64,000 nucleotides of DNA from Dicyema japonicum. Lineage: Eukaryota > Animalia > Dicyemida. Location of the stretch: NCBI GenBank assembly GCA_011109175.1, contig RDEW01000019.1:714145-778144 (forward strand), written 5' to 3'. The notes below the pieces were generated by a model, which saw only the letters and a list, made by a program, of their open reading frames with translations, was not told the origin of the DNA and ran no database searches. This document shows positions 9,422 through 41,503 of this stretch, piece after piece. Every line of letters begins with the position of its first letter. The first letter of the stretch is position 1. The position numbers and the translations under genes are program-made.

Positions 9422-12400
9422 TTAATTATGAATTTCGATGTCGATTGTATCGCTTTGCTGATCATTATCAATAGCTTCTATAGATTCTTCATCGATGGTT
9501 GAAGGTAAATTTGAACATACATTTATTGAATGAACGACATGGTCCGATTGATTTTCTTCATCGGAGGAAAAAAGGTTTAATTGAAATTTCAAAATTTACT
9601 TCGACATTCTCATTATAAGAAGACGTATTAAAATCATTTTCATCTATTGTAATCCCAGATGTTTGTTCAATTTGATTTTCAATTAATGTAGTCATGTTCA
9701 TATCAGAAATAAATTTATCTCCAGAGTTATTATATTGATTTGAATCACTGATATCGTCATCATAACATTTTTACCTTGTTTTTAGTGCATTATCGTTTGT
9801 TGTACTGTATTGTTGATTAAATCGCTCATTTGATTCTTGGCTGATGATGAAGGGTATAATTGATGGACAGTTAATATAAGAGTGATTTTTTTCAAATGTT
9901 GATGTTTCGATAAATTGTTCTTCACCAGTTTCTTCTAAATTTTCATAATAGCCTGATATTTTATGTGCATTAATTTCGTCAGTTTCATTATTTTGAAAAT
10001 CATTTAGTGTAGTCATTTTCAGATCAGAAATAACTTTATCTCCAGAGTTATTAAATTCATTTGAATCACTGATATCGTCATCATAACATTTTTACCTTGT
10101 TTTTAGTGCATTATCGTTTGTTGTACTGTATTGTTTAATAAATCGCTCATTAGATTCTTGGCTGATGATGAAGGGTATAATTGATGGACAGTTAATATAA
10201 GAGTGATTTTTTTCAAATGTTGATGTTTCGATAAATTGTTCTTCACCAGTTTCTTCTAAATTTTCATAATTGCCTGATATTTTATGTGCATTAATTTCGT
10301 CAGTTTCATTATTTTGAAAATCATTTAGTGTAGTCAATTTTCAGATCAGAAATAACTTTATCTCCAGAGTTATTATTTGATTTGAATCACTGATATCGTC
10401 ATCATAACATTTTTACCTTGTTTTAGTGCATTATCGTTTGTTGTACTGTATTGTTTAATAAATCGCTCATTAGATTCTTGGCTGATGATGAAGGGTATAA
10501 TTGATGGACAGTTAATATAAGAGTGATTTTTTTCAAATGTTGATGTTTCGATAAATTGTTCTTCACCAGTTTCTTCTAAATTCTCATAATTGCCTGATAT
10601 TTTATGTGCATTAATTTCGTCAGTTTCATTATTTTGAAAATCATTTAATGTAGTCATTTTCAGATCAGAAATAACTTTATCTCCAGAGTTATTAGTTTGA
10701 TTTGAATCACTGATATCGTCATCATAACATTTTTACCTTGTTTTTAGTGCATTATCGTTTGTTGTACTGTATTGTTTAATAAATCGCTCATTAGATTCTT
10801 GGCTGATGATGAAGGGTATAATTGATGGACAGTTAATATAAGAGTGATTTTTTTCAAATGTTGATGTTTCGATAAATTGTTCTTCACCAGTTTCTTCTAA
10901 ATTCTCATAATTGCCTGATATTTTATGTGCATTAATTTCGTCAGTTTCATTATTTTGAAAATCATTTATGTAGTCATTTTCAGATCAGAAATAACTTTAT
11001 CTCCAGAGTTATTAGTTTGATTTGAATCACTGATATCGTCATCATAACATTTTTACCTTGTTTTTAGTGCATTATCGTTTGTTGTACTGTATTGTTTAAT
11101 AAATCGCTCATTAGATTCTTGGCTGATGATGAAGGGTATAATTGATGGACAGTTAATATAAGAGTGATTTTTTTCAAATGTTGATGTTTCGATAAATTGT
11201 TCTTCACCAGTTTCTTCTAAATTCTCATAATTGCCTGATATTTTATGTGCATTAATTTCGTCAGTTTCATTATTTTGAAAATCATTTAATGTAGTCATTT
11301 TCAGATCAGAAATAACTTTATCTCCAGAGTTATTAGTTTGATTTGAATCACTGATATCGTCATCATAACATTTTTACCTTGTTTTTAGTGCATTATCGTT
11401 TGTTGTACTGTATTGTTTAATAAATCGCTCATTAGATTCTTGGCTGATGATGAAGGGTATAATTGATGGACAGTTAATATAAGAGTGATTTTTTTTCAAA
11501 TGTTGATGTTTCGATAAATTGTTCTTCACCAGTTTCTTCTAAATTCTCATAATTGCCTGATATTTTATGTGCATTAATTTCGTCAGTTTCATTATTTTGA
11601 AAATCATTTATGTAGTCATTTTCAGATCAGAAATAACTTTATCTCCAGAGTTATTAGTTTGATTTGAATCACTGATATCGTCATCATAACATTTTTACCT
11701 TGTTTTTAGTGCATTATCGTTTGTTGTACTGTATTGTTTAATAAATCGCTCATTAGATTCTTGGCTGATGATGAAGGGTATAATTGATGGACAGTTAATA
11801 TAAGAGTGATTTTTTTCAAATGTTGATGTTTCGATAAATTGTTCTTCACCAGTTTCTTCTAAATTCTCATAATTGCCTGATATTTTATGTGCATTAATTT
11901 CGTCAGTTTCATTATTTGAAAATCATTTAATGTAGTCATTTTCAGATCAGAAATAACTTTATCTCCAGAGTTATTAGTTTGATTTGAATCACTGATATCG
12001 TCATCATAACATTTTTACCTTGTTTTTAGTGCATTATCGTTTGTTGTACTGTATTGTTTAATAAATCGCTCATTAGATTCTTGGCTGATGATGAAGGGTA
12101 TAATTGATGGACAGTTAATATAAGAGTGATTTTTTTCAAATGTTGATGTTTCGATAAATTGTTCTTCACCAGTTTCTTCTAAATTCTCATAATTGCCTGA
12201 TATTTTATGTGCATTAATTTCGTCAGTTTCATTATTTGAAAATCATTTAGTGTAGTCATTTTCAGATCAGAAATAACTTTATCTCCAGAGTTATTAGTTT
12301 GATTTGAATCACTGATATCGTCATCATAACATTTTTACCTTGTTTTTAGTGCATTATCGTTTGTTGTACTGTATTGTTTAATAAATCGCTCATTAGATTC

Positions 12401-15400
12401 TTGGCTGATGATGAAGGGTATAATTGATGGACAGTTAATATAAGAGTGATTTTTTTCAAATGTTGATGTTTCGATAAATTGTTCTTCACCAGTTTCTTCT
12501 AAATTCTCATAATTGCCTGATATTTTATGTGCATTAATTTCGTCAGTTTCATTATTTGAAAATCATTTAGTGTAGTCATTTTCAGATCAGAAATAACTTT
12601 ATCTCCAGAGTTATTAGTTTGATTTGAATCACTGATATCGTCATCATAACATTTTTACCTTGTTTTTAGTGCATTATCGTTTGTTGTACTGTATTGTTTA
12701 ATAAATCGCTCATTAGATTCTTGGCTGATGATGAAGGGTATAATTGATGGACAGTTAATATAAGAGTGATTTTTTTCAAATGTTGATGTTTCGATAAATT
12801 GTTCTTCAACAGTTTCTTCTAAATTCTCATAATTGCCTGATATTTTATGTGCGTTATTTTCTTCAGTTTCTTTATTTTGAACTTCATTTAATGTAGTCAT
12901 GTTCATATCAGAAATAACTTTATCTCCAGATTTAATAGTTTCATTTGAATCACTGATATCGTCATCATAAAATTTTTACCTTGTTTTTATTTCATTTTCG
13001 CTTGTTCTACTGTATTGTTGATTAATTTGCTCATTTGATTCTTCGCTGATGTTAGAAGGTAGATTTGATGTAGAGCAAATATCTGAGGAATTTTTGACAA
13101 ATGTTGATGTTTCGATTGATAGTTCTTCAACTGTTTCTTCTACATTCTCAAAACAGACAGATGTTATATGTGCGTTATTTTCTTCAGTTTCTTTATTTTG
13201 AACTTCATTTAATGTAGTCATGTTCATATCAGAAATAACTTTATCTCCAGATTTATTAGTTTCATTTGAATCACTGATATCGTCATCATAAAATTTTTAC
13301 CTTGTTTTTATTTCATTTTCGCTTGTTGTACTGTATTGTTGATTAATTTGCTCATTTGATTCTTCGCTGATGTTGAAGGGTAGATTTGATGTAGAGCTAA
13401 TATCTGAGGAATTTTTGTCAAATGTTGATGTTTTCGATAAATTGTTCTTCACCAGTTTCTTCTAAATTCTCATAATGCCTGATATTTTATGACTGCGTTA
13501 TTTTCTTCAGTTTCTTTATTTTGAACTTCATTTAATGTAGTCATGTTCATATCAGAAATAACTTTATCTCCAGATTTATTAGTTTCATTTGAATCACTGA
13601 TATCGTCATCATAAAATTTTTACCTTGTTTTTATTTCATTTTCGCTTGTTGTACTGTATTGTTGATTAATTTGCTCATTTGATTCTTCGCTGATGTTAGA
13701 AGGTAGATTTGATGTAGAGCAAATATCTGAGGAATTTTTGTCAAATGTTGATGTTTCGATTGATAGTTCTTCAACTGTTTCTTCTACATTCTCATAATTG
13801 CCTGATATTTTATGTGCATTAATTTCGTCAGTTTCATTATTTTGAAAATCATTTAGTGTAGTCATTTTCAGATCAGAAATAACTTTATCTCCAGAGTTAT
13901 TAGTTTGATTTGAATCACTGATATCGTCATCATAAAATTTTTACCTTGTTTTTATTTCATTTTCGCTTGTTGTACTGTATTGTTGATTAATTTGCTCATT
14001 TGATTCTTCGCTGATGATGAAGGGTATAATTGATGGACAGTTAATATAAGAGTGATTTTTTTCAAATGTTGATGTTTCGATAAATTGTTCTTCACCAGTT
14101 TCTTCTAAATTCTCATAATTGCCTGATATTTTATGTGCATTAATTTCGTCAGTTTCATTATTTTTGAAAATCATTTAGTGTAGTCATTTTCAGATCAGAA
14201 ATAACTTTATTATAGTAAGTATTAGTATTGATTTGAATCACTGATATCGTCATCATAACATTTTTACCTTGTTTTTAGTGCATTATCGTTTGTTGTACTG
14301 TATTGTTTAATAAATCGCTCATTAGATTCTTGGCTGATGATGAAGGGTATAATTGATGGACAGTTAATATAGAGTGATTTTTTTCAAATGTTGATGTTTC
14401 GATAAATTGTTCTTCACCAGTTTCTTTCTAAATTCTCATAATTGCCTGATATTTTATGTGCATTAATTTCGTCAGTTTCATTATTTTTGAAAATCATTTA
14501 GTTGTAGTCATTTTCAGATCAGAAATAACTTTATCTCCAGAGTTATTAGTTTGATTTGAATCACTGATATCGTCATCATAACATTTTTACCTTGTTTTTA
14601 GTGCATTATCGTTTGTTGTACTGTATTGTTTAATAAATCGCTCATTAGATTCTTGGCTGATGATGAAGGGTATAATTGATGGACAGTTAATATAAGAGTG
14701 ATTTTTTTCAAATGTTGATGTTTCGATAAATTGTTCTTCACCAGTTTCTTCTAAATTCTCATAATTGCCTGATATTTTATGTGCATTAATTTCGTCAGTT
14801 TCATTATTTTGAAAATCATTTAGTGTAGTCATTTTCAGATCAGAAATAACTTTATCTCCAGAGTTATTAAATTCATTTGAATCACTGATATCGTCATCAT
14901 AACATTTTTACCTTGTTTTTAGTGCATTATCGTTTGTTGTACTGTATTGTTTAATAAATCGCTCATTAGATTCTTGGCTGATGATGAAGGGTATAATTGA
15001 TGGACAGTTAATATAAGAGTGATTTTTTTCAAATGTTGATGTTTCGATAAATTGTTCTTCACCAGTTTCTTCTAAATTCTCATAATTGCCTGATATTTTA
15101 TGTGCATTAATTTCGTCAGTTTCATTATTTTGAAAATCATTTAGTGTAGTCATTTTCAGATCAGAAAATAACTTTATCTCCAGAGTTATTAAATTCATTT
15201 GAATCACTGATATCGTCATCATAACATTTTTACCTTGTTTTTTAGTGCATTATCGTTTGTTGTACTGTATTGTTTAATAAATCGCTCATTAGATTCTTGG
15301 CTGATGATGAAGGGTATAATTGATGGACAGTTAATATAAGAGTGATTTTTTTCAAATGTTGATGTTTCGATAAATTGTTCTTCACCAGTTTCTTCTAAAT

Positions 15401-17438
15401 TTTCATAATAACCTGATATTTTATGTGCATTAATTTCGTCAGTTTCATTATTTTGAAAATCATTTAATGTAGTCATTTTCAGATCAGAAATAACTTTATC
15501 TCCAGAGTTATTAAATTCATTTGAATCACTGATATCGTCATCATAACATTTTTACTTGTTTTTAGTGCATTATCGTTGTGTTGTACTGTATTGTTTAATA
15601 AATCGCTCATTAGATTCTTGGCTGATGATGAAGGGTATAATTGATGGACAGTTAATATAAGAGTGATTTTTTTCAAATGTTGATGTTTCGATAAATTGTT
15701 CTTCACCAGTTTTCTTCTAAATTCTCATAATTGCCTGATATTTTTATGTGCATTAATTTCGTCAGTTTCATTATTTTGAAAATCATTTATGTAGTCATTT
15801 TCAGATCAGAAATAACTTTATCTCCAGAGTTATTAGTTTCATTTGAATCACTGATATCGTCATCATAACATTTTACCTTGTTTTTAGTGCATTATCGTTT
15901 GTTGTACTGTATTGTTTAATAAATCGCTCATTAGATTCTTGGCTGATGATGAAGGGTATAATTGATGGACAGTTAATATAAGAGTGATTTTTTTCAAATG
16001 TTGATGTTTCGATAAATTGTTCTTCACCAGTTTCTTCTAAATTCTCATAATTGCCTGATATTTTATGTGCATTAATTCGTCAGTTTCATTATTTTGAAAA
16101 TCATTTAGTGTAGTCATTTTCAGATCAGAAATAACTTTATCTCCAGAGTTATTAGTTTTTATTCGAATCACTCAAATATTCATATGATTGGACGGAATCC
16201 GAGGAATTTCCTGGAGCCATACTTTCGTTTGAGAAATAACTCTTTGAATTTTCAAATACATTTCCTGTACTTATTGTATTTTTCAAATATTCATTTGATT
16301 GTTCGAAATCTGAATAATTTTCTGGAAGCGAACTTATGCTTGATAATTGACTCTTCGAATTTTCAAATACATTTCCTTTACTCATAGCACCTTTCAAATA
16401 TTCACATGATTGGACTGAATCCGAGGAATTTCCTGAGGCAAACTTTCGTTTGAAAAAGAACTCTTTGATTTTTCAATTACATTTCCTGTACTCATTGGAC
16501 CTTTCAAATATTCATTTGATTGGGAAGAATTTCCTGGAGGCGAACTTATGCTTGATAAATGACTTTTTGAATTTTCAAATAAATTTCCTGTACTCATAGG
16601 ACCTTTCAAATATTCATATGATTGGACGGAATCCGAAGAATTTCCTGGAGGTAAACTTTCGTTTGAGAAATAACTCATTGAATTTTCAAATACATTTCCT
16701 GTACTCATAGGACCTTTCAAATATTCATATGATTGGACGGAATCCGAGGAATTTCCTGGAGGCAAACTTTCGTTTGAGAAATAACTCTTTGAATTTTCAG
16801 ATCATTTCCTGTATTCATTGGACCTTTCAAATATTCATTTGATTGGGCGAAATCTGAAGAATTTTCTGGAGGCGAACTTATGCTTGATAAATGACTCTTT
16901 GAATTTCCACATACATTTCCTGTAATCATAGCACCTTTCAAATATTCACATGATTGGACGGAATCCGAGGAATTTCCTGGAGGCAAACTTTCGTTTGAGA
17001 AAGAATTCTTTGAATTTTCAAATACATTTCCTGTATTCATTGGACCTTTCAAATATTCATTTGATTGGAAGAATTTCCTGGAGGCGAACTTATGCTTGAT
17101 AAATGACTTTTTGAATTTTCAAATACATTTCCTGTACTCATTGGACCTTTCAAATATTCATATGATTGAACGGAATCTGAAGAATTTCCTGGAGGCGAGC
17201 TTACGTTTGATAAATGACTCATTAAATATTGCTTCAGTTATTGAAACTATATTTTAAATTTTCTACAATTTATATTTGTAAAATTATTTTGTAATATTAT
17301 CTTTCAGTAATTTACTTAACGGGCTTTTGGTCTAGAAATAATAAAGTTATATTGTCATACTCCGAGATTGGAATTTGAATATCCATACTCCGAGGGAACT
17401 CGTTCGCAATCCACGCAGCAGGCTTCCTCAACTGACAT
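9422..17438 (-). CDS. Giant repeat-expanded acidic Ser/Asn/Glu-rich protein (family member A), interrupted by 1-nt indels
   Basis: Candidate ATG at 17438, intron 17332-17360, about 10 x 37-aa repeats, about 20 x 321-bp repeats, and a unique C-terminal part ending IDIEIHN*. Repeat lengths are multiples of 3 and open on this strand. Shares SNLG|intron and PGNSSDSVQSYE motifs with members B, C and D. Confidence 0.55.
9690..16155 (-). repeat. 321-bp coding tandem repeat, about 20 units, two sub-types plus chimeras
   Basis: ORF starts recur at about 321-bp spacing (10016, 10337, 10657 ...). Type A is MTTLNDFQNNETDEINAH; type B is MNMTTLNEVQNKETEENNAH (about 12850-13950). Confidence 0.97.
16156..17220 (-). 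repeat. 111-bp (37-aa) coding tandem repeat, about 10 units, some 102 bp
   Basis: Unit PPGNSSDSVQSYEYLKGPMSTGNVFENSxSxFSNESL. GGACCTTTCAAATATTCATATG recurs 111 bp apart (near 16599 and 16710). Two interspersed variants (FSNES / LSSIS). Confidence 0.93.
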
Positions 17439-17699
17439 TTTTTTAATTGTTAAAAAAAGAGTTATATCTATTCGATTAGTCATCGAGGTGTTCTAGTCCA
17501 TCCTTTGTTATCTTTGAAAAATATGTTTTTCATGACTTGATGTTTCTACATTTTCTTTAATAGATTAAATTTTAATTCTTTGTTTGTTTTACCTCATATA
17601 TTATCTTACTTATTGACATTTTATAACCACCTTCATAATTATAGCGTTTCCTGACAATTAACGTCACTTTCACGACCAATAAGGTCACTATATTTTTAA

Positions 17700-18200
17700 T
17701 GGTAAAAAACTTAAAAACAAAAAATAATTAACAAACAAAAATTAAGAAATTATTCCATGATAAAATTAAGAAGCATTTTCCTATAGTTTTTCATGTGCTG
17801 AATGCATTCTCAATCGGATTGGAAAATTGTGGGTAAAGCAGTAAATTTGGAACATGGTGGTTTTATTTCAATTAAATCGTTTATACCTGTATAATACGGG
17901 CATTATCAAAAATAAAGAGCCGGATTTCAATTTCCTCTTTATATCAATTTTTATGGATTCCAGAAAAATTAGTCATTGATGCAATGACTTATGACCTCTA
18001 AAGGAATGTGGTTTTGAGGTAGAAGATCCTTCTCCACGTCTTGGTTTTGAGCATACTGCAAATCCAACGTAAATTATTATGTTCTTTTGTCCAATAAATT
18101 TATTTACCTTTATCTCAATGTTAATGATTAGAAAGCGACGCTATTAGCCAGAAAAATTACGTTAAATAAATACCTATCAAATTTAAAATTTCGGGAAACC
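17700..18200 (-). mobile_element. Tc1/IS630-like DDE transposase remnant
   Basis: Minus strand LFIFDNAR ... SNPIENAFS; duplicated at the window start. Confidence 0.6.
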
Positions 18201-19480: not shown

Positions 19481-20089
19481 TTACCGGTAGGCCACCCATT
19501 GCAATGCAGGTAGTTTATCAGCATTAATTAATTAATCCCGGGTATACCGAGAAAGGAGTTAAAGTAAAAAACTAGTTAACTGGATCCAGTTTCCACTTCT
19601 ATAGAAACAAAGTTCATCCAGAATCAGCATAAAGGGGAAAAGACGTCCATTACTTGCAGTTGTGAAAACCCCTCCAGTAAAGTGAAGGAAAGCAAATAAT
19701 CCTTTTTTGGGCCAGTTTGACACTGGGCGCCACCTAGACAGGTAGATCACATGACGCCACTCTAATAGGTAGGAAAAGAGGAGGAACAGACAAAACAAAC
19801 AGAAAACTTCAACCATTTAGCCATGTAGCACCACAAGCCGCCACGCGGTTAATAATAATAGTTGTTTGCTTTTTTTCAAGTTGCTTCAAAATTAATTTTT
19901 CAAAAACGCATTCTCTTATGTTTATAATATAGATAAGCTATGACATAATTTAACATTTTTCTATTTAACCTCAAGTTGTTTCATTTGCAGAAATCGTCCA
20001 AGGAACAGAGTGATGAAGAGCAAATGATCCATTTTGATACAACACTGTTACTTGGTGCCTGATGAGCCAGGTGGACGCTAAGATAATTT

Positions 20090-20340
20090 ATTTTTATTTA
20101 TTTAACAACCAAGACAACGGTAAAACCAAACTAACTATCACGTGATCCCGATGCGTTCCACCAAAATCCTCATCCTTTCCCGGTGCTCCTCTCTCGTGCC
20201 CACACAAGCTCGTACTGGGCGGCTGACTGCATTTGCAAGGCCACCTTCCGCATCCCAGCGTTAGTTTTATAAGGCCTCCAGAGTAGTCGGTCCGGTTCTG
20301 TGTCTCCCACAAGTCCACCGCTCCGTGACTCTGAACGCCT
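20090..20340 (-). mobile_element. 3' end of Jockey/I-like LINE (family of 24886-25493 and 42790-43900)
   Basis: Shared GCATCGGGATCACGTGATA...GGTTGTTAAATAAAT 3' end with a (TAAA)n tail. Confidence 0.7.
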
Positions 20341-20495
20341 TACAAACTTAACGAACTAAGAGAACGTTAAAAATTAATTTTTCATAATAAGCCACAGAAT
20401 TATTTTAATAAACTTTAATTTTTAAATTATTTTTGTCAAATTTTTAAAAATTAAAATATTTTTAATAATTGATTACAATTCAAATTTTTAATTTT

Positions 20496-20738
20496 ATGGG
20501 CTCTGTGAGTGATGAAAAATATCACGCGGCTTTACGTAGGGATTGGGTTGGGAGAGAACAGTTGAGCGTCATTGTGAGCTCAATATCGAGATTAGTTGAC
20601 ATCATGAATAAATTTGGTATAATTTAAACCCTTAAAAATATAGAGGCTTCCTCAATGTGCAGAATATCAGCACTTAAAGAAAAACTCTGCCAAATCGAAG
20701 CTAAACTTAGTTACATTGAAAATATTTTTTATAATTAA
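20496..20738 (+). CDS. BRK1: BRICK1/HSPC300 subunit of the WAVE/SCAR complex, copy 1 (71 aa)
   Basis: Exons 20496-20616 and 20644-20738 (27-nt phase-1 intron) give MGSVSDEKYHAALRRDWVGREQLSVIVSSISRLVDIMNKFEASSMCRISALKEKLCQIEAKLSYIENIFYN. This matches BRK1 DWANREY..I.SSI....F...CR.R...LNEKL...E....YIE. Confidence 0.9.
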
Positions 20739-20745
20739 ATGTTAG

Positions 20746-22470
20746 TTAAACAGGTTTTACTCCGTATTCTAGTAGAATAGTGTTTATAAAAGAGTAGTAA
20801 AGTAACCCAATCGCTAGTAGCCTAAAATAAAAAGTTGAATTACCACAAGAAAACTGTTTTCACGTAATTCGACTTTTTGCTTCCCTTTTTAGAAACTTTT
20901 TTCAAGTTTTGGTCAAACAAATCATTTTCGGTCAAAATCTTTCGAGTCAAAGATTTTTTCTCGTTCAACAGATTAGTCTGTAGTTTATTTCTCCATTCAA
21001 GTTCGAAGATATTTTAGCGGTTTTAAGCTTGTATTCTGTTTTTTCTGGTATTTCATCATCCGAAATGATATCTTGGCAATAATTGTTTAAATTCCGATTT
21101 TCATTTCCCGTCCAATCGAAAATAATTTCTTGTAAATCATCATTCTGCTTAGTATTATAAGCGGATTTGTTAGAGTAATTAGCAGGTAATCCATTTGCCA
21201 TTGGATTTGTGTCAATTTTGACGTCACTTAGCATTTCTTTGCTTATAAAGTCATTTTCATTGCCCAGAATTCCATTTTTGGATTCTGAATATTTTTCTTT
21301 AGTGTTTTCCTCATCTTGAATATTAATTAAGTTGGTTTCCAAGGGAATGTCCTTTAATTGGTCATTATTTCCGGAATAATAGGAGGGGACCGAATCAATA
21401 CCATAATTATCAGTGGGTTCAGAGGAACTATTGAAGGCATCTACTTTTTCTGAGTAATTTTCTTCGTCGGTGCTATATTTTTCTGACCCTTGGAAATCTT
21501 TGAATGATTCCCAAATAGGTAAACTATCCGTCGAGTCCTGAATCAAAAAATCCTTAGTGTCTGGAAGTGTTCTTTCCAAAGCTGAGTCAGGAGTTATAGA
21601 GTTTTTGTGAAATTCTTGGGCTCTCTTATCAAATATAGACAGTTCAGAAACATTCACTCCTGATTCTTGGATGGATTCGCATAAATATTCAAAATATTCA
21701 ACGGAATTAGAAGAATATTTAACAGATCCACCTCTTTTAGGGTTTGGAGACGAGTTCTTGTTGCAAAATAGCGTATCGTCGTCGGAAAACAAATCCATTG
21801 ACGCATATTTCATGTCTGTTTTCAACGAAGCTGAGTTAAATCCAAATTTCTTGGGTTTGTATGAGGAATATATATCGTCAGGTTCTATCTGATCCAATTC
21901 ATCGAAATCTATTTTTCCTTTCATGTCTTTTATTTTCTCATTTTTCTCGGCAAACGGCTTTAAATCAGTTTTTTGATCGTTCTGAATCGATTTGTCAAAA
22001 ATGTTCAAATCCAAATTAACTTTCCATGTTTTCTAGGTCATCAAGTTTCTAAATAAACCCCGAGATTGGAAAGAAATATTATATTGTTCCATGAAGTGCT
22101 CAGTCCTTCTATAAGTCGCAATATTGACTCCCAAGTGTCGCTGTCCTCTGGTAAATTAATCTTTTTGGCTTGAAAATAGAGTTGGTTAAGTTTATTAGGA
22201 TAATCCGCTGTAAGCAATTTAATATCCTGAGATTAAGTATTTCTGAATACTGTGAGTGAAAGCGACTGCCTTTTCTCAGCCAGAACCTCCATTTTTGCTA
22301 GTCTTTTTCGAAGCTGTTCGTATGCAATCAGAAATTGGTTCAACGATCGTCTGCACGAGGCGTCTGATATTTCTTTGAACTATGGAATTTGAAATAAAAA
22401 AATAGCTGTTACAGAGCTTATTAGATCGCTTAGTTGATTGTGCTTGACTTGAATGCTGCATTGGACTTTA
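20746..22470 (-). CDS. Spectrin-repeat-like + acidic spacer + C-terminal TM with KASH-like tail (nesprin-like; family member B)
   Basis: Introns 22380-22412, 22227-22250, 22033-22058 and 20822-20843. N-part QFLIAYEQLRKRLAKME...NKLNQLYFQAKKI...ILRLIEGLSTSWNNI; 349-aa acidic ORF; one 1-nt frameshift near 20990; ends KKGSKKSNYVKTVFLW|LLAIGLLYYSFINTILLEYGVKPV*. The start codon is unresolved. Confidence 0.6.
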
Positions 22471-23757
22471 AATTAACTACATTTAACCTCATAATTATTT
22501 ATACAAGTTTGTCCGATTTTTTAAGTATTTTATTTTTATTTATTTAAAAATTAAAATTATAAAAATAATAATAAAATAAAGTTACTTTTTTGTTTTTGTT
22601 GCAAATAGTTCGCATTTTTTCAAATTTAGGTGAGTTTTCTTTTATAAAAGTTCGAGGACGATGATTAATGATTTAATTACGGATACTATTATATCCAATT
22701 TGGTTTCGATTTAAATTCTCGTAGGCTAATCAATACAATATGTGGTTCTATCATTCTTCCAGAAATATAATTATATCTTATCACTTTTTAGGTTTTAAAT
22801 CCGATATGTGAAGATTTTTCTTGTCAAATCACCACCAACAATAAGTTTTGACCAGACGCAGGAGAATTAAACTTCACAGTGCGCCATAAGTTTGTCCTGC
22901 ACTGTTAGCCTGCTAACTCTAATTTGTTGTCAAAATTAAGTTTATACAAATACTTCCAGTTAGCGTAGAAGTTAATAGGTCATGTCGGTGAGTCTGTGAT
23001 GTAGCTTTGCTGCACCATGGGACAGATCTCGTACACAGAATGTTTTATTCTTCTCGAAATGTGTGTAACCTCGTGTTTCCCCTTCTTGGATTCAGAAGAC
23101 GAGAACTTCCAAATACAAGCAAATATCGGATGCACCAAAATTCAAGTTTAGATCTTGTCTGAGACAAACTGGAGTAGTTCGGATTCGTCTTGAAAAAAAG
23201 AGGAACTATTAGTCAGTTATTGACGTACATCATCGGGTCCGGATAATCTATCGCGTCCGGGTGAATAATTAATATAGTCATCCAAAATTACTGTGAGGTA
23301 GAAAGTTTAATGAAAAAACAATATTGGAAAATTTTAATTATGTGAAAGTCCTTGACGTTGCAAGGGACAACGATGTTAGATCTTAACATTGGTTTCCGCG
23401 TTACCCATAAGCAGATGAATACTTAGGGTTTCGCATGTGTTGTGATATTCACTATCCGTTCTACATGTTTTCTTCATACAACTCTCCTCCTCAATGGCTT
23501 CCGAAGTTCATCGAGTTGTCCACTGTTCTCAATTTCCCACCAATATGGGCATAATCTTGGCCCAGACGGATAGGAAACGTAGTTAGTTCTTTGCCGTCCA
23601 CGAAAACCCAAAGTTACATTTTGATTGAAAAATATTCCATAATGAGTTACACAACACCAATACGGAGAATATGCCCAAAAAGGCGTCCGCAAGATTTTAT
23701 CACTTCATCGCTTATCGGTCACATTTGCATAGTTAGTAAAGAGTCCTAGCCAGTAGA

Positions 23758-24810: not shown

Positions 24811-24885
24811 TTAAGTATTTTATTTTGCAAATTTAAAAATTGTAATTTTAAAATTTAATTAAAATTTTATTTATTTACTTCAAAA

Positions 24886-25493
24886 CCGGCTCGTGGTGAA
24901 TGCAGTGGAGTCGTCTACGTCACTATTTACCTCTGACAAAAGATTGGGACGGAGGACAGTCATCTTGAAGTTAAACAAGGTTGGCATCCTTTTCAACAGA
25001 TGTCAAAGGATCTTGGGTGTGAAAATTGATATGTATCTCTGTGAACACCACACGTAGAAAACATTCTATTCAAATGCGAGAAGAAACTGAACGTATTGAA
25101 AAGTTTATCGGGAATATGGAAGAGTGGTACTCACCCAATCTTGATGAACGTGTACAAACAGTACATCGAGCCATGTTTCTCATATACATGCGCTTCTTGG
25201 AGACTGTCCATATTTTGGACAAATATGAGGAAATGCAAAAGAAAGATTACAGAGTAACGGAGCGTTGGATTTGTGAAGATCACCCGAACCGGACCTACGC
25301 ATCTGGAGGTCCTTATGAGACTAAACTCAGATCACGGGCAGTGGCCCTGGGAATTCAGGCAGCCGTTCTGTACGTTCATGCGCGGGCATGAAGGAAAAAC
25401 ACCGGGCAAAGATGAGGTCTCTGTTAGAATGCATCGGGATCACGTGATAATTAGTTCGGTTTTACCTTTGTCTTGGGTTGTTAAATAAATAAT
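24886..25493 (+). mobile_element. 5'-truncated Jockey/I-like LINE
   Basis: Reverse-complement match to 42800-43417; (TAAA)n tail. Confidence 0.8.
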
Positions 25494-31500: not shown

Positions 31501-32849
31501 TGCATGAATATACATAATTCTAACTATTAGAATTCTATGAAATTTTTAATTTTTCCAAATGGCGTGAAATGATATTTTAAGTCAATGGCCATCAATTTTT
31601 TTGTTGCAGGTTAGAGTTAATAGAGAAAGTTAAAGGCATACCAAAATTTTTACAAAAAATCAAAATTTGGCTACTATTTGAACTGTGGATCTAAAAAAGA
31701 AACATACTTTTTTAATGGATAATTGGCTAGAATTAATCGGCAGAAAACGAAAACCAAGTAACATATCAGTCTTCCTTCAAGACCTTGAATTTATCAAAAA
31801 GTTGCGTTTGTGACTCTTAAATGATTGTAAACTAAAATTCAATTAACGAAAATGAACACCTTCAAATGAATGAGCTCTTCAACTAACAAATCTAAGATAA
31901 CAAAAAAGTACCAAATTTTAGAGGACTATTTGTTGTCCCTTTAGGCGTGGTGATATAAGGAATCGTGGCCCATGACTTATTTGATTGAATTAGTCACCGA
32001 GTAAATGTCACCGAGGATACCCAATGCAGGATGTTTTCAAGAGCATATCTCGCTGGCAATCGTCAGAACAAACAAACAGTCTGGAGAAAATAAGGTTTTG
32101 TGAAAAAAGTCGAAAAATGGTATCCAAAAAATAAAATTTATTAAGTTTTAATTATTGATCCTCAGAATATAATAGTTGACGTATCATGATAGTAATGAGA
32201 TCAACTAATGCAGCCACCGTGATTCGCGGACGTCGTGACGGTCCAATCATAATATTTTTTATACTCCAAAAAATTACCAAGAAATATAAAAACCAATATT
32301 ATGTCTAGAATAATTAACAGAATTCTGGCTAAGGCAACGAGTCGGGATTGTCATATTACGTAGAAACGTATACGCAATCTTATCTAAAAAGGCTTAATTA
32401 TTTAAATTTTTGTTAATAAATTGTTTTCCCATGAACAGAATTAGTGTTAATTTGAGCAATTCTAGAGTTAGGTTAGAATTTGCGTTATAGTTAGGGTCAG
32501 GTTAACTATATATGGGATCTTCTTATCATAATGCTTCCTAATGCAGGTTGATGCTCCATGAGTCTTTTTCGACCTTGTAAACTCATTCAAATGACAAAGA
32601 CTTTTTTTATACATCCAGTAGTCTCGACTACAATACTAAGGAAATGAACTGATAGAGGGAAACTTTCGTATTTCTTTTATTTTGACTTCTCAGTTTTTCA
32701 TGAGGCGAATAATCGTTTAAAGAACTTCCGATAATATTGGAAAAAGAATGTTAGTATACATGACGTCACAACCAATGGCTTCCTCACATTGAACGGAAAA
32801 AAATATTGTGTTATTTTAGAACGGAAAGATATTTAATCATGTGTCGGCT

Positions 32850-33740
32850 TATCAAATGCGAATATGTAAGATAATATTTAAGGTAAACCAAACGGATAAT
32901 TTTTGAAAAATTTGTAGAAAAAAATCACACGCAGGCCGTCAAGAGACTGAGGGAATTTTCGCAGACGATTCGATCCAGGCGTTCATTGAAGAGATAATTA
33001 AATAACAAACTGAAAATATGATATGTTTAAGAAAATGTAAAAAAAATCCAGTGTCTAATAACAGAATACTGAAAACATTCCCGAAAGATGATACTTGAGC
33101 AACTCGATGACCGTTAGGTTAAATATATTTTTATTATTTCTGGACTGAATATAATAAAATGATTCCGAAAGACGTAATCATCAACACAGCACGTGTATTA
33201 TTTTTGTGAAAGATAATATTACAAAAATAATTCTATAAATATATATTTTAGAGAATTTAAAATATCGAAAGTATAGAAAAACAAAAACCTAGAAAAACAC
33301 CATCGAAAGGCTGAAATGAGAAAAAATAAAAGGAACGAATATTTGGCTCAGGAAATTCCTTAGATTCCGTCCAATCATATGAATTTTTGAAAGGTCCAAT
33401 GAGTAAAGGAAATATTTATGACAATTCATTGAATCAGTTCTCAGACGAAAGTTTACATTCAGAAATTCATCAAATCAAAATGAAGAAACATCAGGGAAAA
33501 CTGAAGATGAAGACACTACTTTTCCTCGCAAAAAGCCAATCTGGAGAAAATTCTACAAATAAAGAAAATTCTACTTACATTAATAAAATCTTCACAAAAC
33601 AGAACATAACATTTTTATGGTGATTTACATGTTTTATTTTAGTGCATTATTTTTTTATTGTTGGATTAAATTTTCGAAAGACATTTTTAACAATAACCAC
33701 TAATTATACTACTTATCCGCTATTTTTATTTGATTTAAGT
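32850..33740 (+). pseudogene. Degenerate paralogue (member C) of the KASH-like tail-anchored family
   Basis: Inverted similarity to 17200-17620 and one copy of GNSLDSVQSYEFLKGPMSKGN. The same phase-2 mini-intron after FL-TG (33620-33642) precedes a hydrophobic exon. Many stops upstream. Confidence 0.6.
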
Positions 33741-34859
33741 TGAACAAACATAATTTACGAAAAATAGCTAAATTAGTTGTTGGTTAAGTGTTGAACCTCT
33801 CTAATAATGTCTGTCTTTATAGCAGTCTCAGTATTTACCTGGTGAACGAGCTTGATAAACTGCAAAGATATGCGAGGAGGAAATTTACGTGGAGAAAACT
33901 GGTAGAACGGGTAGTGAAGAGACAAGCAAAACCTTAAGTATTATATGCAACGCGGGAGTGCATTTAACTGACTAACTTTTTAACTACATAATGATTAGCT
34001 AAAGGAGATGGTTAGTTAGTTACCACAACTGCTACCATATGGTATGGACTCTTCACCATCTCATCTTTTTGCAGATCCTTAATTTTTATATCGAGTCACT
34101 AACGCCACTTTTCTTTATAAAATCAGTCATTTGTCTTATATCACCATTTTTATTGGCTTTATCAGGCCGTTTTCTTCGTTTTTGATATATTTATTTATTT
34201 CTCCTTTTTGCGCAAGCATGCTAACTGCTGCTTCTTCTTGGTCTTTTCTAACTGCGATATTGTCTAGTTTTTATTAGTGTTAGTACCAACCCTCATATCT
34301 GTAAACATGCGACAGGATAAATACCCACTTGAACATGAAATGGAAAACCTTTCCCAATTTTCGATTTTCTCATGCACAGAGGAACTTGGAAGGCCCTCTT
34401 TCTTCTAACAGCTACGTCTTCCATAACGTCCCATTTCTTTCCGATTAAAACTCCAACCCCTCCAGTGGAGTGGGGGAGAGCAAATTATCCTTTTTCGTGC
34501 CGGCCTGGCACTGGACGCCACCTAGACAGATGGATCACATGACGCCACTCTAATAGGAAGAAAGGAGGAACAGACAAACAAACAAAAACTTCAACCAATT
34601 AGCTACGAAGCACCACATGGCGCCACGCGGCTAACATCACAGAAAATGGAAATCAAATTAACAAATTGGCTCACCGCAAGAAAGACGTGCGGGAAGCGGT
34701 CTGGCTGAGGCAACGTATTGGTATCACAGTGTCCGCGAAAACGCTTACTCCGTGATGTCAGCAGCCGCTCTCCCCCATAGTTAATAAATAATATTTTATT
34801 GTTAATAAATTTTTTAAATTTAAATTAACATATTTTATGAAAGCAACACGACTTAATGC

Positions 34860-37800
34860 TAACACCCACTTATTTAACAACAATAAAAAAGTTAATATAT
34901 TTAATCAACAACCTTCCTCGCCTGCCTGTTCGCCAGCCTCCTCAGGCAGGTTCGATTCTGGTTGCTGAAACAACTCCGAGAGCGCTTGTCTAATTGAACC
35001 CTCTGCCCATATGGCATCTCAGGGCTCTGCCTCCTATACTCCAGTGTCAGGCTCTCTAGGGTCCGCTTTAACACAGTGGACTGTAGATAGGCCTGGAGCT
35101 TCCTATCTACCCCCAACTGCTTCAGATAACCCTTGTGGTACTTTGTTGCAATTCCTTCCCACGTCATTACTATAGGAATAACGAGGACCTTGCAACCAAG
35201 CATCTGCCCCATCTCGTTTGCAAGAAAGTCATACTTCCTTTTTTTCTCCACCTCCACAGTCTGCAAACGGTCTTGAGACGTGATGCCAACCTCTATGATA
35301 AGGACTTGGCCAGACTCCTTATCGTGTACCACAATGTCCGGTTTATTGTGCTTGACTAGCACCGAGGTACGGATAACACTGTCTACCTTAATTTGGACCC
35401 TGGTGTTCTCTACTACAGATTGCACCTTATGAGTCCGCAACTTTCTGGTGTGGCGAATACCATACTTATTGCATAGTAGAAGATGAAGACTCCTTACTAC
35501 CTCGTTGTGCCTCCACACATAGTCGTGGCAGAGCATGGATCCACATCGAGTGGCTAAATGATCAACCGACATGCTCCTTGACTTACAGTGGGGACATGTA
35601 TTTGTTGATCGACCCCAAAAAATATTGCGGTCTTGCATATACGTGTACAACGCCTCCGATCGAGGTGAGTTGTCACCGTATTTTAGCCATATTGTCGACG
35701 ACTTAAGGTCGACATGTGGGTTGTCCAATGCTCTGAAGAGGACCTTATGAAGGCTTTTTAAGTTGATCTTTTCCATCAAATTATTATATTGTAATTCGAT
35801 CAACGCCTTCACATTTACTAGCCCACCATCATCAACACCATACTTAGCAGACAAAAAAGGTCTGATAGTGCCTAGGTGGGTTGCCCGTGTTTTCTCGGTC
35901 GTTATTATGGCGTGCTTCCTAGCAGACACACTTGACCCAGCTATCAGGGTGTCGTGCATTCGCATTAGGATACGCTCACTTAGTTGGACTACTCCACACA
36001 GTCCACGGCCGAATTTATCACGGGGTAAATATAGTCTCTCCTTATTGGCTGCCAACACATGGACATGGTTCTCTCTGAGTACTCCACGGATCATAACATC
36101 CATCTCATCATACTCTTTGGGCTCAAACTCCACAACACCTATGTAGTAGTTTAGCAGCGAGACAGCATACTCATTTAATGCTAGGAACAAATTCCTTGCA
36201 TTTAGAGACGTCTTACACAATAACGCTGCTCTTTTACGGATGCCTTCAGTAATTTGTCGCTTTGTCTCAGGCATTATAAGGGACTTTGGAGATTCGGTAA
36301 CACCCAGATACTTATATCCTTCGTGTTCCTCTAGGACTCTTACTAACTCGCTACATACTTGCGTGTTAGTCGCAGACTTTGAATAATTCAAATCTAGCCC
36401 TATACTCTCAAAGAATTCCCTGGCACAGACCCCCATGGAGTAGAGCTCCTCGGCTGTTCGAGCATACATCTTCAGTCATCGATAAAAAGAAGGTGATTTG
36501 TACTGAAACAGACCCCTTCACAATGAACTGGTATTTGCTCAAACCGGTCATTGAGGCGGCGACTCAATGGCTCCAAACAGAGAACAAAGAGTAGCGGAGA
36601 CATGCTATCCCCCTGAAGGATCCCCCTCTTGAGTTTTACCTCGCCTATCCGGTGCCTATTATAGTTCAGATGAATACTCCACCTATTCATCACAGCCACT
36701 ACAAAGCTGATGAACCACACAGGCATACACAGACTGTGTAGGCACTCGACAAGGTAAGAATGATCAACTGAATCGTAAGCCTTCTTCACATCCACCCACA
36801 TAGACAAAAGTGAGTTTCCGTGAGACACAGAAAGGCATTTGTTGATCAAAGCCTGCTCTTTTGCCCCCTGACAATTTCGCACAGTTCCCAACTGATTCTC
36901 GGAGAGAATCCCATTTGCGTCTACAAAGCTCCTGACCTCATTAGCCACCAATTTGGTCATCAGCTTATACAGGGTTGTCCAGCTTTGGGATCAAATAAGT
37001 TGTCCCTGTGCATGCCCAATCAGGAATCGTTTCCGGGTTAGTGATGCTTTTCTGTAATACACGACACATAGACTAGTGCAATGAAGTGCATCTTTTGATA
37101 AAGAAATAATAAACTTTATCGACCCCGGTGGTTTTCCAATCAGTGAGATGTCTCACTACCGCCTCAAATTTCTTGCAAAAATCGAAAATTCCTCAAGATT
37201 CCGCCAAGAAAGATGCGGCGCTGTACGGGACATTCCACGCTGATCCTCTGCGTGGTTTAGCATCACACATACTACTCATGTGGAAAGCATGTCCGCGTCC
37301 TGCTGGGAACATACACTATGGCCATTTTCGTGTAGGCGATGGAAAAACAATCTGCGATTAAACTCAAGCAGATTATTTTCTCTCCTTTCATACACCGATT
37401 TTCATATGTATAGATTTTCATCTTATACACCATTACTGCCCCCTCTAACTCCACATTTGCCCTCCTCAACTCTTTGAGGTCCCATTTGGGAACACGGAGT
37501 TTACTAATTAGCCTCTTTACTATAAGCGGTGCTTTTCCTCTAACCCCTCTCGCCACACTACTTATGTGCCCCTCCAGTGCTTCCAGCTCAGTCTGTCTCC
37601 AAACAATCTTGGCACAGATCTGCTCCCTCCATTTACTGGTGGTCTGGGCTTGTCCGTCAATTCCTCATAGGTGATCTGTGCTGCATACAGCACTAGGGAG
37701 ATGTCACCCAATGACCCTACTGGCTTAGCCTCCACCGCATAAGCCACAGCCTTATTGATGCAGGTTAACACTACACCGTTAACCTTACAATGAGGAATCT

Positions 37801-38310
37801 TGCGGGTAAATCTACGGTCCTCAAGTGGGACATCTGCCGCTGCAGCGAGATTCCGCGCAAAAACCTCATAAACATGCTTGAGCTGCAACGTATCACAGCT
37901 CTGGTGCTCGTGCTCTCTTTGACAGTTGTGGTCACCTGGTCCCCGCCCCTTTAGACCAGTACCCTCTTTGCCTACAGCCATCTTCTTGAGTTCACTCACA
38001 GATATAGCAGTACTGAATCTGCCACTGCAGAGCTCCGCCAAGTATGGCCATCCATTCCAGGGCATTCGAGATAGCCTGCTACGTACCTGCAGGACTACCT
38101 GCCTCGCCCATTCTTTTGGGTCATCTGCCACAACGCTCTCGGATATGGCAAGAATTACATTCATACCATCAGGTAACGCAAGTGACCCTTCTCCTTTTTT
38201 CCTTTCAACATTTTTGCCAACTCGAGAGAGTTTTAACGCCACCGAATCGAACGCACGTTGCATGTTTTTTATACTTAATGCTAATATATTGAATATCTTA
38301 GATTAAGTAA
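34860..38310 (-). mobile_element. R4/Dong-like RLE non-LTR retrotransposon, near full length, several frameshifts
   Basis: RT motifs WVDVKKAYDSVDH, RGILQGDSMSPLLF, HLLFIDD and YKYLG; CCHC finger CPHC..HLATRC; RHNEVV; KPDIV..IIEV..KKRKY endonuclease. Visibly more GC-rich than the flanks. Confidence 0.93.
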
Positions 38311-38626
38311 TAAATTATTTATATAAAAATAATAGGGCTTGAAATGGCGGTGATCAGGGAACACCTTTGCAATCCTGGCCTCTTACTAAAAGACTTAGTT
38401 TTTTACCTTTTTCAATGAATTTATTCGATTTTAACAAATTTACATAATTTATCAATTACTAATCTCCGGGCGTCATGAAAAAGCTCAATCACCCAGTAAG
38501 ACGTGGTCTTGTAGATTTGAAAAGAGAAACCAAATTTTAGTCCTAATTTATATCGATTTAACGTAGTTTCGTAACGTTGCTAATATTTAAGATAAGTTCC
38601 CGTTCACGTGTGATTTGCATTGTTCA

Positions 38627-39298
38627 ATGAGTAATCAGAATAATTGGCTACAGAACGCTGATATTTTTTCTGTAGATAACGTTCAGAATTCAAGTAATGT
38701 CGACCGAAATTACAACTCTGTGTGCAATCTCAATTCAAGTGAACATAATTCCCATCGAGGAGTCGACTATTTCGCCAGTAATGATTCAGTCTTGAGTTAC
38801 TCCCCTCAACCAGATGGATCACTATTACAGGCTGACAGTCGACGTGAAGTAGAAAATCCACAGTTGGACGTTTATTATTTCGCCAATTTCTTCAAGCAAG
38901 AACGTGTCAAATTTGGTTATTCGCAAGCAGACATCTCCTTGCTAATGAAAAAGAATGGGCACCCCATTAGTCAAACGACGGTTGGTCGCTTTGAGACTGG
39001 TAAACTGTCTTTTATGAGTATGCAGAAATTTAAAAATATTTTTGCTACTATTTTGGGACTAATAATAAGGGACCTTCCCTCTAAATTTGAGATCATGTCG
39101 TCCACGGATCAGACTGTCAAGAAAAAAACGTTTTTTAACAAAGATGCCAAAGAAACGTTCGAATATATGTTTAATAAAAATATTTATCCGACCAAATCAG
39201 AGATTCAAGAAGTTGCAAAAACCTTCGATTTGCCGAAGTCTAGTGTAAGGTGTCGGTTCAATAACAGAAGGCAGAAAATGCCTAAATTTCCTAAATGA
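38627..39298 (+). CDS. Divergent intronless POU-domain homeobox transcription factor
   Basis: POU-specific domain FANFFKQERVKFGYSQADI...ISQTTVGRFETGKLSFMSMQKFK, then homeodomain KKKTFF...FNKNIYPTKSEIQEVAKTFDLPKSSVRCRFNNRRQK. POU class not assignable. Confidence 0.9.
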   Translation: MSNQNNWLQNADIFSVDNVQNSSNVDRNYNSVCNLNSSEHNSHRGVDYFASNDSVLSYSPQPDGSLLQADSRREVENPQLDVYYFANFFKQERVKFGYSQADISLLMKKNGHPISQTTVGRFETGKLSFMSMQKFKNIFATILGLIIRDLPSKFEIMSSTDQTVKKKTFFNKDAKETFEYMFNKNIYPTKSEIQEVAKTFDLPKSSVRCRFNNRRQKMPKFPK

Positions 39299-39399
39299 CT
39301 GTAAATTTAATTTTGTTAAATAATTTTGTTGTTGATTTTTCTGCTTAATCCTGCTCATTGTAAGAATTTCTCCCTATAGTTCACACATGTCGAATTTAT

Positions 39400-40040
39400 A
39401 GAAGTTTGACAACGTGGTCTGTCTTGTCGAATGTTTTTGGAGGGCGCCATGCTGTTATGGATGACTTCATTGGTGGGGAAGATACTCCCTGCAACGTTTG
39501 TTCCAAGCGAAAGCTTGGGATCCGATGTATGAGTATTCTTCGTTCTTCCACAAGGGATGTGTCAGGCTGTCGAGGAAGTTTCTGAAACCTTTGTCTTCTT
39601 GGGTTTCTTCCCCTCGAGAGTCCCTTGTCATGGAAACAATAAAGTTTTCTCTTCAGAATGCGTTTGCCGCCGAGCTAATGGATGGAGACGTCCGGGCAGA
39701 AGTTAGGACATTATTTTCAACCGAGACTGCTCTCTCGGTCACCCCTGAAGTCATTTCAACTTTGGAGAATAAACATCCTCCCTCTCCATTGGATCTGACA
39801 GAATTTTCAATCCCATTGGACTTCCCCTCCCCGTTTTCTTACCAAATCTGATGTAATGGCTGTATCAAATCCTTCACAGCAGGCAGCAGCGGGGGTTTGA
39901 TGGTTTGCGCCTGGAAATATCAAAGACCTTTAGTTATTCTTGACTTTTGAGGCGGGAGCTCACCTTGTAAACAAACTAACGTGTGTGTGAAACTGAGTTC
40001 CAAAGGATTTCTCTGGCAGTTATCAGGGAAACAGCTATTG
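39400..40040 (+). mobile_element. CRE-like retrotransposon fragment (N-terminal to RT)
   Basis: LMDGDVRAEVRTL...LENKHPPSP followed by SFTAGSSGG.DGL. The 39990-40035 segment recurs at 18600-18650. Confidence 0.55.
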
Positions 40041-40080
40041 ATTCTTGAAGCATTTTGAAGAGTTGATACTGGACTATCTC

Positions 40081-40516
40081 TGGCTGAACGTAACGTCTGA
40101 TGACATCGGATCTTAAGGTCGTGGGTTTCGAATCCGAAAGACGGAGTTTTCAGCGAAGATCAATTTTTGTAAAACAGATCTCATCCGTGAGGCGACGAGT
40201 CCTTCTGGCACAACACAGTAGTTGAAAAGGATCTTCCTACCTTCTCCCTGACCAAATTCTCTGGTGAAGATTGCATTATGAAAACTCTTCCGCCAAAGAA
40301 TGAGGTATGTCCGCGACGGTAGGAAGTGTATGAAAATGGAAGAGGGTAGACCTACTTCTCCACATCTCTTCTGAAATGGAAGCCTGTAATATACTATTGG
40401 AAGATGGATTGGTCGGCACAGGCAGATGTTCTCCCTTAGGTTCCTTCCTTGGATTAATTAGTTATGACTGTTTGTGCTAAGCTTACCAAAGGCTGTAAGC
40501 CTGGGTTAATAATAAC
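40081..40516 (+). mobile_element. tRNA-derived SINE with 14-bp TSD
   Basis: TACTGGACTATCTC at 40067-40080 and 40517-40530; A-box-like TGGCTGAACG, B-box-like GGTTTCGAATCC; TAATAATAA tail. Confidence 0.75.
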
Positions 40517-40696
40517 TACTGGACTATCTCGATGTATTCTGTGTCCTAACATTCTGATGCATAAAAATTATCCACTAAAACTGCAAACATCAGGAAGCAC
40601 GTTTTATTAGATTACTGTAAGATAATCAGAAGTTTATCTACAAATATTAGAGAATTAATAACTGTGACGGGGAAGAGAAACTTAGGAGGTGTTAAA

Positions 40697-41496
40697 ATGG
40701 AAACAAATATTGGTAACGGAAACAGCAAAGTTACTATTATTTATAACTTAGATAACACAAAAATGTTCGTTTTCTAAAGATTCCTTAGATTCTGTCCAAT
40801 CATATGAATATTTGAAATGCCCTATTAAAAATGAAAATGGTTTCGAAATTACTATTTCCAACGAAAAAGTACAAGATTTAGATGAAGCTTCAATATGTCC
40901 TTCCTCCGCCGAATATTCAATTCCAGGAGATTCATCAGATTCCGTCCGATCATATGATTTTATGAAATGTTCTAAATCAAGTGGAAATCTACAAACATTA
41001 ATAATCAAAATGGAGAAGAATCAGGAAAAACTAAAAATGGGAGCGCTTTTGAAGCCACTATTTCTTATGAGAAAGTCAAAGATTTGGATAAAAAATCAGT
41101 AATCACTTCAAATTGTGTAGAAAATCCTACAGACGTTGTTAATTCAACAAAAAATAATTCAATCGATGTGTCTCAGAATTCATATTTTTTTAAAAGCTGC
41201 CAAAAATCTGAAACGTCTATCAATGATGAAGGACTTAACATAGAAAATGAACCTTCTTCAACTAACGTGGAAACTCCTGCAAACATTGTTAGTCCTTCAA
41301 TAAAGATTTTAACCAAAAATGATATGTATAGTCAAACCTCGACTAAAATTTCAAAAAAAAGAAAAATAAAATCGAATTACGTGAAAAAAGTTTTCTGGTG
41401 GTGATAAACTTTAATTTTAGGCTACTAGTGATTGGTTTACTTTACTACACCTTTATAAACACTAGTCTATTAGAATATGGAGTAAAACCTGTTTAA
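40697..41496 (+). CDS. KASH-like tail-anchored protein (family member D), frameshifted
   Basis: PGDSSDSVRSYDFMK motif shared with member A. The 20-nt intron 41401-41420 joins KKRKIKSNYVKKVFWW to LLVIGLLYYTFINTSLLEYGVKPV*. 5' end uncertain. Confidence 0.55.
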
Positions 41497-41503
41497 CTAA
41501 CAT

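Follow-up and report, generated by a model that had tools for sequence, protein, structure and literature searches.

The closest described systems to the genes studied here are the KASH proteins, whose C-terminal tails bind SUN proteins. Published rules for these tails include a terminal PPPX, Tyr at -7, Leu at -9, Pro-11 as the site of a kink and Cys-23 where tails are long (PMC6527376; PMC6727767); opisthokont tails measure 8-32 amino acids (aa) (PMC13200780), and nesprin-4 displays the order spectrin repeat, motor-binding region, transmembrane segment (TM), KASH (PMC9537699). Here we analyzed 64,000 nucleotides (nt) of Dicyema japonicum (assembly GCA_011109175.1, contig RDEW01000019.1, positions 714,145 to 778,144 of the forward strand; hereafter the window, from whose first letter all positions are counted), which hold four related loci, A to D. 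The single most likely job of locus B is, in our analysis, that of a short-tail SUN-binding adaptor resembling nesprin-4 or UNC-83, to which we assign a probability of about 0.4.

Locus B shares with nesprin-4 (SYNE4) and UNC-83 an N-terminal helical bundle (predicted in B), a disordered middle part, a C-terminal membrane segment and a short tail without Cys-23 that ends in Gly-x-x-Pro-apolar. With nesprin-1/2, ANC-1 and Klarsicht, the proteins of the Pfam KASH family, it has in common a membrane segment at the C-terminal end, behind which comes a tail whose penultimate residue is Pro. Tails of 9-13 aa with a penultimate Pro also occur in the plant WIP and SINE proteins, in which short non-PPPX tails can bind SUN (PMC13200780), although their consensus is (V/I)PT versus KPV here and the lineage is unrelated. 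The features of locus B are as follows:

20746 to 22492, minus strand: locus B, the only candidate with the full architecture; it would encode about 550 aa provided that the break in frame near 20990 arose in assembly
22059 to 22379, minus strand: N-terminal helical exons, predicted exon by exon with AlphaFold as a long helix and then a helix-loop-helix
20968 to 22032, minus strand: spacer of 355 aa, acidic and polar (19% D+E, 30% S/T/N/Q)
20844 to 20989, minus strand: pre-membrane piece with a Lys-rich patch; in the present assembly its frame differs from that of the spacer
20746 to 20821, minus strand: last exon, which encodes a hydrophobic segment and the tail, whose end reads LEYGVKPV*

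Open splice paths lead into the 355-codon exon of B from ATG 22492 or ATG 22461. The candidate exons are 22492-22488, 22455-22413, 22379-22251, 22226-22059, 22032-20844 and 20821-20746, with introns of 32, 33, 24, 26 and 22 nt, while the alternative 5' model starts at ATG 22461 and has a 31-nt intron. Of the two, the 33-nt intron (GTA start, 24% guanine-cytosine (GC)) has the more typical look, the alternative intron of 31 nt beginning with GTT and having 39% GC, and the first helix is complete in the four-intron model only. The first-pass annotation of this DNA had relied on such mini-introns, which are indeed genuine in this genome: introns in the window measure 20-33 nt, among them those of the rps5 gene with 25, 27 and 22 nt. 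Reports of introns this small among animals are confined to myxobolid myxozoans and dicyemids (PMC13644364). A variant genetic code was considered and ruled out, the rps5 stop being TAA.

Homology, profile and fold searches were performed on each exon separately; the putative spectrin repeat spans two exons and the TM-plus-tail is divided by the last intron, each being scored in pieces. The first helical exon was modelled by AlphaFold as a single 37-residue helix (pLDDT 92) and the second as a helix-loop-helix (pLDDT 77), a prediction that fits a three-helix bundle. The three helices claimed earlier for this segment are thus predicted exon by exon, but its description as spectrin-like finds no spectrin match in Pfam, PDB, Foldseek or phmmer; by eye the Trp spacing of the third helix resembles what we take to be the spectrin consensus, a likeness confirmed by no tool. 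The spacer contains PIWES and FDWT, and its DSLPIWE may resemble the nesprin adaptive-domain context; no homologue of this long exon was returned by a protein homology search. The best 19-residue hydropathy of the last exon is 1.48 in B and 1.33 in D, with four further apolar residues 5' of the intron, and only B and D have a single TM segment near the C-terminus.

The tail of B and D is 7-15 aa long, depending on where the helix ends, and its last residue is apolar, with Pro at -1, Gly at -4 and a further apolar residue at -7. As background we used 310 stop-terminated readings with a hydrophobic stretch, taken from the rest of the window and from L001, one copy of a related block on scaffold VCDQ01001570.1 (see below): a Pro-apolar end was found in 4 of them and G-x-x-Pro-apolar in 0, the latter pattern having been selected after sight of the tail, which lessens its value for the KASH reading. 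From these features, read from the sequence, "KASH-like" appears a fair lead for B and D. The second copy of this end is carried by the following segments:

40557 to 41496, plus strand: locus D, a shorter copy with possible starts at 40557 or 40697
20364 to 20942, minus strand, copied at 41302-41877: duplicated segment, 89% nucleotide identity over ~580 nt, of which ~380 nt are 3' flank

Locus D combines a repeat of the type seen in A and C, with motifs at 40788 and 40938 and only remnants of the 5' helical region, with a basic patch of the B type, a 20-nt intron (41401-41420) and a last exon at 41421-41496. In B and D alike, as had been proposed, a basic patch leads into a hydrophobic stretch and the end reads INT(I/S)LLEYGVKPV*; since both derive from one duplication, their agreement is not independent conservation. 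Similarity between them ends ~33 codons upstream of the membrane segment. The last exons are 90% identical, with 4 synonymous and 3 non-synonymous changes (ratio of non-synonymous to synonymous differences, pN/pS, 0.27; p=0.074), and the final nine codons differ silently only; these seven changes hint that the tail exon is translated and under purifying selection. The 3' flanks (20364-20745 and 41497-41877), at 92-96% identity, exceed the synonymous sites of the last exon (~79%), which suggests recent conversion or a constrained 3' element.

Loci A to D are genuine paralogues by sequence, homologous in overlapping pieces, and the proposal of a four-locus family is borne out by links of A, C and D through a Ser-rich repeat and of B and D through the duplicated 3' end. 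Over the repeat and the 5' region, the alignment of A with C scores 128 (shuffle maximum 56) and that of C with D scores 72 (shuffle maximum 40); A has ~10 occurrences of SSDSV(Q/R)SY(E/D), C has one and D has two. The longer form PG(N/D)SSDSV(Q/R)SY(E/D), which had been given for all three, does not extend to C, where GN-SLDSVQSYE is found. B is tied to A and C chiefly by way of D, with two weak direct links: the family motif recurs in weak form at 21726 in its spacer, where, of 34,687 windows compared with the repeat profile, the highest-scoring one outside the members lies (23/1000 shuffles), and its helix-loop-helix exon aligns over most of its length with A 17383-17237, across two stops (score 40; 2/200 controls). 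Moreover, a phase-2 GT-AG intron precedes the terminal exon in B (20843-20822, 22 nt), C (33620-33642, 23 nt) and D (41401-41420), confirming the earlier observation. In all three this last intron opens with an in-frame stop, and its retention would yield a soluble form without the membrane segment. Two further features belong here:

32849 to 33743, plus strand: locus C, a decayed copy collinear with the 5' end of A, with one repeat motif and the 23-nt intron
17362-17373 and again 22060-22071, minus strand: a 12-mer, giving no supported link between A and B

The 12-mer had been taken as a common SNLG donor of A and B. It exists at both sites, but the 5' regions of A and B align at chance (28 versus a shuffle mean of 28), and the sole open path of A with 19-36-nt introns reads it as IPISE, in another frame and without that donor; an SNLG donor in A would require introns of 60 and 48 nt and was rejected. 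As for locus C, no open 5' path with 19-36-nt introns was found. Its natural last exon has a 13-residue apolar stretch and the end DIFNNNH*, and its 19-residue hydropathy, 0.02 in the natural frame and 0.67 in the shifted one, falls short of a TM. The first-pass annotation had obtained a KASH-like ending by removing one T; the shifted frame in fact continues past YPLF to YPLFLFDLS*, five residues beyond Pro-Leu, with NFRK in the middle of the helix, and one extra C-terminal residue abolishes SUN binding (PMC6527376). The similarity of the last exons of C and B is not significant (176/2000 shuffles). Judged by its sequence, C is best read as a decayed, disabled copy. The family as a whole is a small, recently duplicated orphan family in a dicyemid that very probably spread through local duplications, parts being exchanged between copies.

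Locus A differs from the others in its repeat arrays:

17196 to 17386, minus strand: 5' exons in the simplest open path (17386-17321, 17300-17248 and 17217 onward)
16172 to 17227, minus strand: 111-nt tandem array, whose ~9.7 copies encode the SSDSVQSYEYL repeat and in which the frame switches several times
9679 to 16172, minus strand: 321-nt tandem array, ~20 copies of two unit types
9422 to 9746, minus strand: diverged terminal unit ending DIEIHN* (stop 9424-9422), with no membrane segment

The 20-nt intron of A (17320-17301) is matched in position by 33193-33212 in C and 40601-40621 in D. Each 321-nt unit is open over 98 codons and has in addition a 27-nt GT...AG element, within which a TAA stands in frame; the terminal stop of A lines up with this TAA in every unit. 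Like repeat-expanded orphan genes of parasites that grow by tandem exon duplication, A has grown by 111-nt and 321-nt units, with mosaic unit types; unlike them, its 321-nt unit has this TAA in a GT-AG element aligned with the stop of the gene. Either the 27-nt elements are spliced, giving a protein of ~2,400 aa, a length that presumes splicing of all of them and all indels to be errors, or translation stops in the first unit, the first TAA lying near 15875. For splicing speak a frame that is otherwise open (p 0.002, shuffles) and 52 substitutions between the unit types with zero new stops (p ~0.03). Against it stand a pN of 0.185 versus a pS of 0.153 between unit types, a 27-nt element that varies between the types at only 1 of 27 sites, and 27 indels across 19 units, 13 of which are affected (the arrays of A together have ~30); 13 of the 27 indels lie within runs of at least 3 bases. 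In the 27-nt element (9748-9774 and the other units) the AG belongs to a Ser codon, which the first unit carries as uninterrupted coding sequence. On this sequence pattern, intron birth by tandem duplication is possible for the 27-nt elements.

The best 19-residue hydropathy of A is 0.24, which leaves it without a hydrophobic tail, and the sequence 3' of A gave no match to the tail of B; A has thus lost, or never had, the membrane segment and, having no membrane anchor, cannot be a nuclear tether. Two candidates at this locus were discarded: a likeness to LEYKF at the 3' end, which is faint and not significant, and a Pfam TNT score on the repeat (E 0.13, 13 bits against a cut-off of 27), regarded as noise.

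Taken as a mechanism, the products of B and the shortened D would be tail-anchored, the helical bundle and the acidic spacer lying in the cytoplasm and a tail of 7-15 residues in the lumen of the endoplasmic reticulum (ER) or the perinuclear lumen. A SUN trimer would hold the G-V-K-P-V tail and thereby retain B in the outer nuclear membrane; its cytoplasmic part may bind the cytoskeleton or motors. A would be an offshoot lacking the tail, its last exon amplified ~20-fold. The combined scenario, in which a KASH-type protein of dicyemids is recognised for the first time in B, which binds SUN through the shortened non-PPPX tail LEYGVKPV within a fast-turnover family, and in which A gained ~20 new 27-nt introns from tandem duplication of its last exon, the old stop being absorbed into the new donor of a 2,400-aa disordered protein, seems to us rather unlikely.

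A number of observations weigh against the KASH reading of B. Poly-proline is strictly required in mammalian cells (PMC2733748), and the tail of B and D ends VKPV, with the penultimate Pro alone in place of PPPX. Leu stands at -7 instead of an aromatic residue and Ile (B) or Ser (D) at -9 instead of Leu; the Tyr lies at -5, the L-x-Y pair being displaced two residues towards the end, and Pro-11 and Cys-23 are absent. B also departs from nesprin-4 and UNC-83 in its tail of at most ~15 aa and in having no profile or fold match and no LEWD/EWD kinesin-light-chain motif, of which none was found in B, C or D, and from the canonical KASH proteins in a tail about half of 30 aa, in the absence of EEDY and CH domains, as well as of Pro-11 and Cys-23, and in having one putative repeat. 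Because these defining features were tested and not found, B was not filed as a KASH member. The gene models add to this, as helix A of B hinges on the choice of the 5' splice model, D has a frame break near 40990-41030, and none of the GT-AG introns of 18-60 nt spans the frame switch of B near 20990, possibly an assembly slip or a true mutation.

The searches point the same way. Pfam KASH and spectrin profiles gave no match to the exons of B and D up to E=10, with limited power as an intron cuts through the membrane segment; these were the profiles against which the first-pass annotation had proposed to check the two ends, and run per exon they did not bear its reading out. No match was returned by phmmer of the helix-loop-helix exon of B against 1.8 billion representatives, by Foldseek with both B exon models or by PDB sequence searches with the B exons, and no dicyemid SUN or KASH record turned up in the literature and supplements searched for SUN and KASH in dicyemids or myxozoans. 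These blanks are weak evidence, since both diagnostic domains are interrupted by introns, and they weigh little because the animal is fast-evolving and the cytoplasmic parts of KASH proteins diverge too fast for BLAST (PMC9537699). An exact look-up of 8 window proteins found no match, nor did the exact tail pattern in metagenomes. One metagenome locus (L004) with an 11-residue word of B was rejected as a chance match: it is bacterial, with 52% GC and prophage-like genes, among them a metallopeptidase-like gene and helix-turn-helix regulators. It had been chosen for that word among 241 million records, its E-value is relative to the candidates only, and phmmer against the whole library was blank.

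That B and D are generic tail-anchored proteins, adaptors or spacers of the ER, Golgi or mitochondria whose tail is the end of the membrane segment and whose KASH likeness arose by chance, is possible and only narrowly less probable than the SUN-binding role, though we would bet against it. With such proteins, syntaxin-type SNAREs included, B shares the basic patch, a single C-terminal hydrophobic segment and no signal peptide seen, and a basic patch ahead of a C-terminal helix is common among them. The missing KASH-defining residues and the blank profile and fold searches fit this explanation, as does a helix running through TILL, which would leave 7 residues, fewer than the 14-mer still binding SUN2 (PMC6527376); Pro-apolar ends are nevertheless scarce in the background (4/310), the helical N-terminus agrees with the tail, and the last nine codons change silently only. 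A more specific version makes B a SNARE-like or golgin-like protein with an N-terminal Habc-type bundle, and syntaxin-type SNAREs, too, have three helices at the N-terminus, a polybasic stretch and a helix at the C-terminus. We hold this very improbable: no exon matches a SNARE or syntaxin family in Pfam and B shows no SNARE motif or other known domain, the ~33 codons of B-D homology before the membrane segment are fewer than the ~60 aa of a SNARE motif, and an acidic spacer of 355 aa is atypical.

The cluster may instead consist mostly of decaying duplicates, with real breaks in B and D and, in the 321-nt array of A, a neutral amplification of the last exon together with its stop. Every locus is broken as assembled, pN is close to pS between the unit types of A (0.185 versus 0.153), the unit TAA is aligned with the terminal stop, just 13 of the 27 indels fall in runs of at least 3 bases, the region is rich in transposon fragments, and a related dicyemid has no D-like gene at the syntenic spot. 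Yet B retains a 355-codon open exon in DNA of 33% GC together with well-formed introns, the 52 substitutions between unit types of A create no stop (p ~0.03), the tail exon has a pN/pS of 0.27, and long-read assemblies often leave indels in tandem arrays; wholesale decay is in our view quite improbable. Least credible of all is the model of the first-pass annotation, in which all four loci encode KASH proteins and a spacer of up to more than 2000 aa tunes the length of the nuclear tether. Its family link is real and A conditionally reaches ~2,400 aa, but A, the sole long-spacer member, lacks a membrane segment and tail, C lacks an open 5' path and its end, which had been misread, overruns Pro-Leu, so that two anchored members remain, one of them truncated, and tuning by spacer length falls away.

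The window has a GC content of 28-46%, and it comes from an animal, since it includes a POU-homeobox gene (38615-39298; Pfam Pou 2.6e-12, Homeodomain 2.6e-10). D. japonicum, whose host is O. sinensis, has a genome of 36.7% GC with 49% repeats (PMC6736024). The POU gene is a highly divergent single exon whose open reading frame (ORF) found no homologue in a protein homology search; dicyemid POU genes lie outside known families (PMC6543705). The gene rps5 lies at 47626-48311 on the minus strand, with introns of 22-27 nt at positions common to a copy in an octopus assembly. The divergent 14-3-3 gene (56441-57503, one ~300-nt intron) has its best relative, at 67% identity, among proteins annotated as Octopus sinensis, the next match being 51%; that relative is encoded on the unplaced scaffold VCDQ01001570.1 (GCA_006345805.1), where homeobox, rps5, 14-3-3 and HMG-CoA reductase genes follow the order of the window and the rps5 introns are equally small. 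Because of the tiny introns and gene order in common with the window this scaffold looks dicyemid, and we infer that it is a dicyemid contaminant of the Octopus sinensis assembly, the window coming from a related dicyemid. A myxozoan source, considered since myxobolids have introns of this kind as well (PMC13644364), was rejected in view of the synteny with the octopus scaffold. The ~21-kilobase (kb) block of homeobox, rps5, two 14-3-3 and HMG-CoA reductase genes is present on it in at least three copies (L001-L003) with 94-98% identity; 14-3-3 is single in the window and has two adjacent copies there. Relative to those compact copies, the 5' part of HMG-CoA reductase in the window (60576-63686) has inserts of ~0.7-1.5 kb, one of which contains a 97-nt tandem array (61289-62025).

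A GC-richer non-LTR (long terminal repeat) retrotransposon in three ORF pieces, by eye reverse transcriptase-like and C-terminal nuclease-like, lies on the minus strand between C and the POU gene (34901-38263). A reverse-transcriptase-like fragment forms inverted 620-nt copies (24882-25492 and 42797-43416, 90%), with weaker copies at 20086-20339, and remnants resembling DNA transposons or integrases (Tc1/mariner-like, hAT-like and integrase-like, by eye) are found at 2100-3130, 4752-6540, 17620-18145 and 54300-55500.

The array of A lends itself to a clean test of whether introns arise through tandem duplication, in a genome whose introns measure 20-30 nt. If B binds SUN, the animal KASH code would extend beyond PPPX and Tyr-7, its tail would serve as a pattern with which to look for the KASH proteins still missing from parasites that evolve fast, and it would show which parts of the LINC complex (which links nucleoskeleton to cytoskeleton) are retained by an animal of 30 cells.

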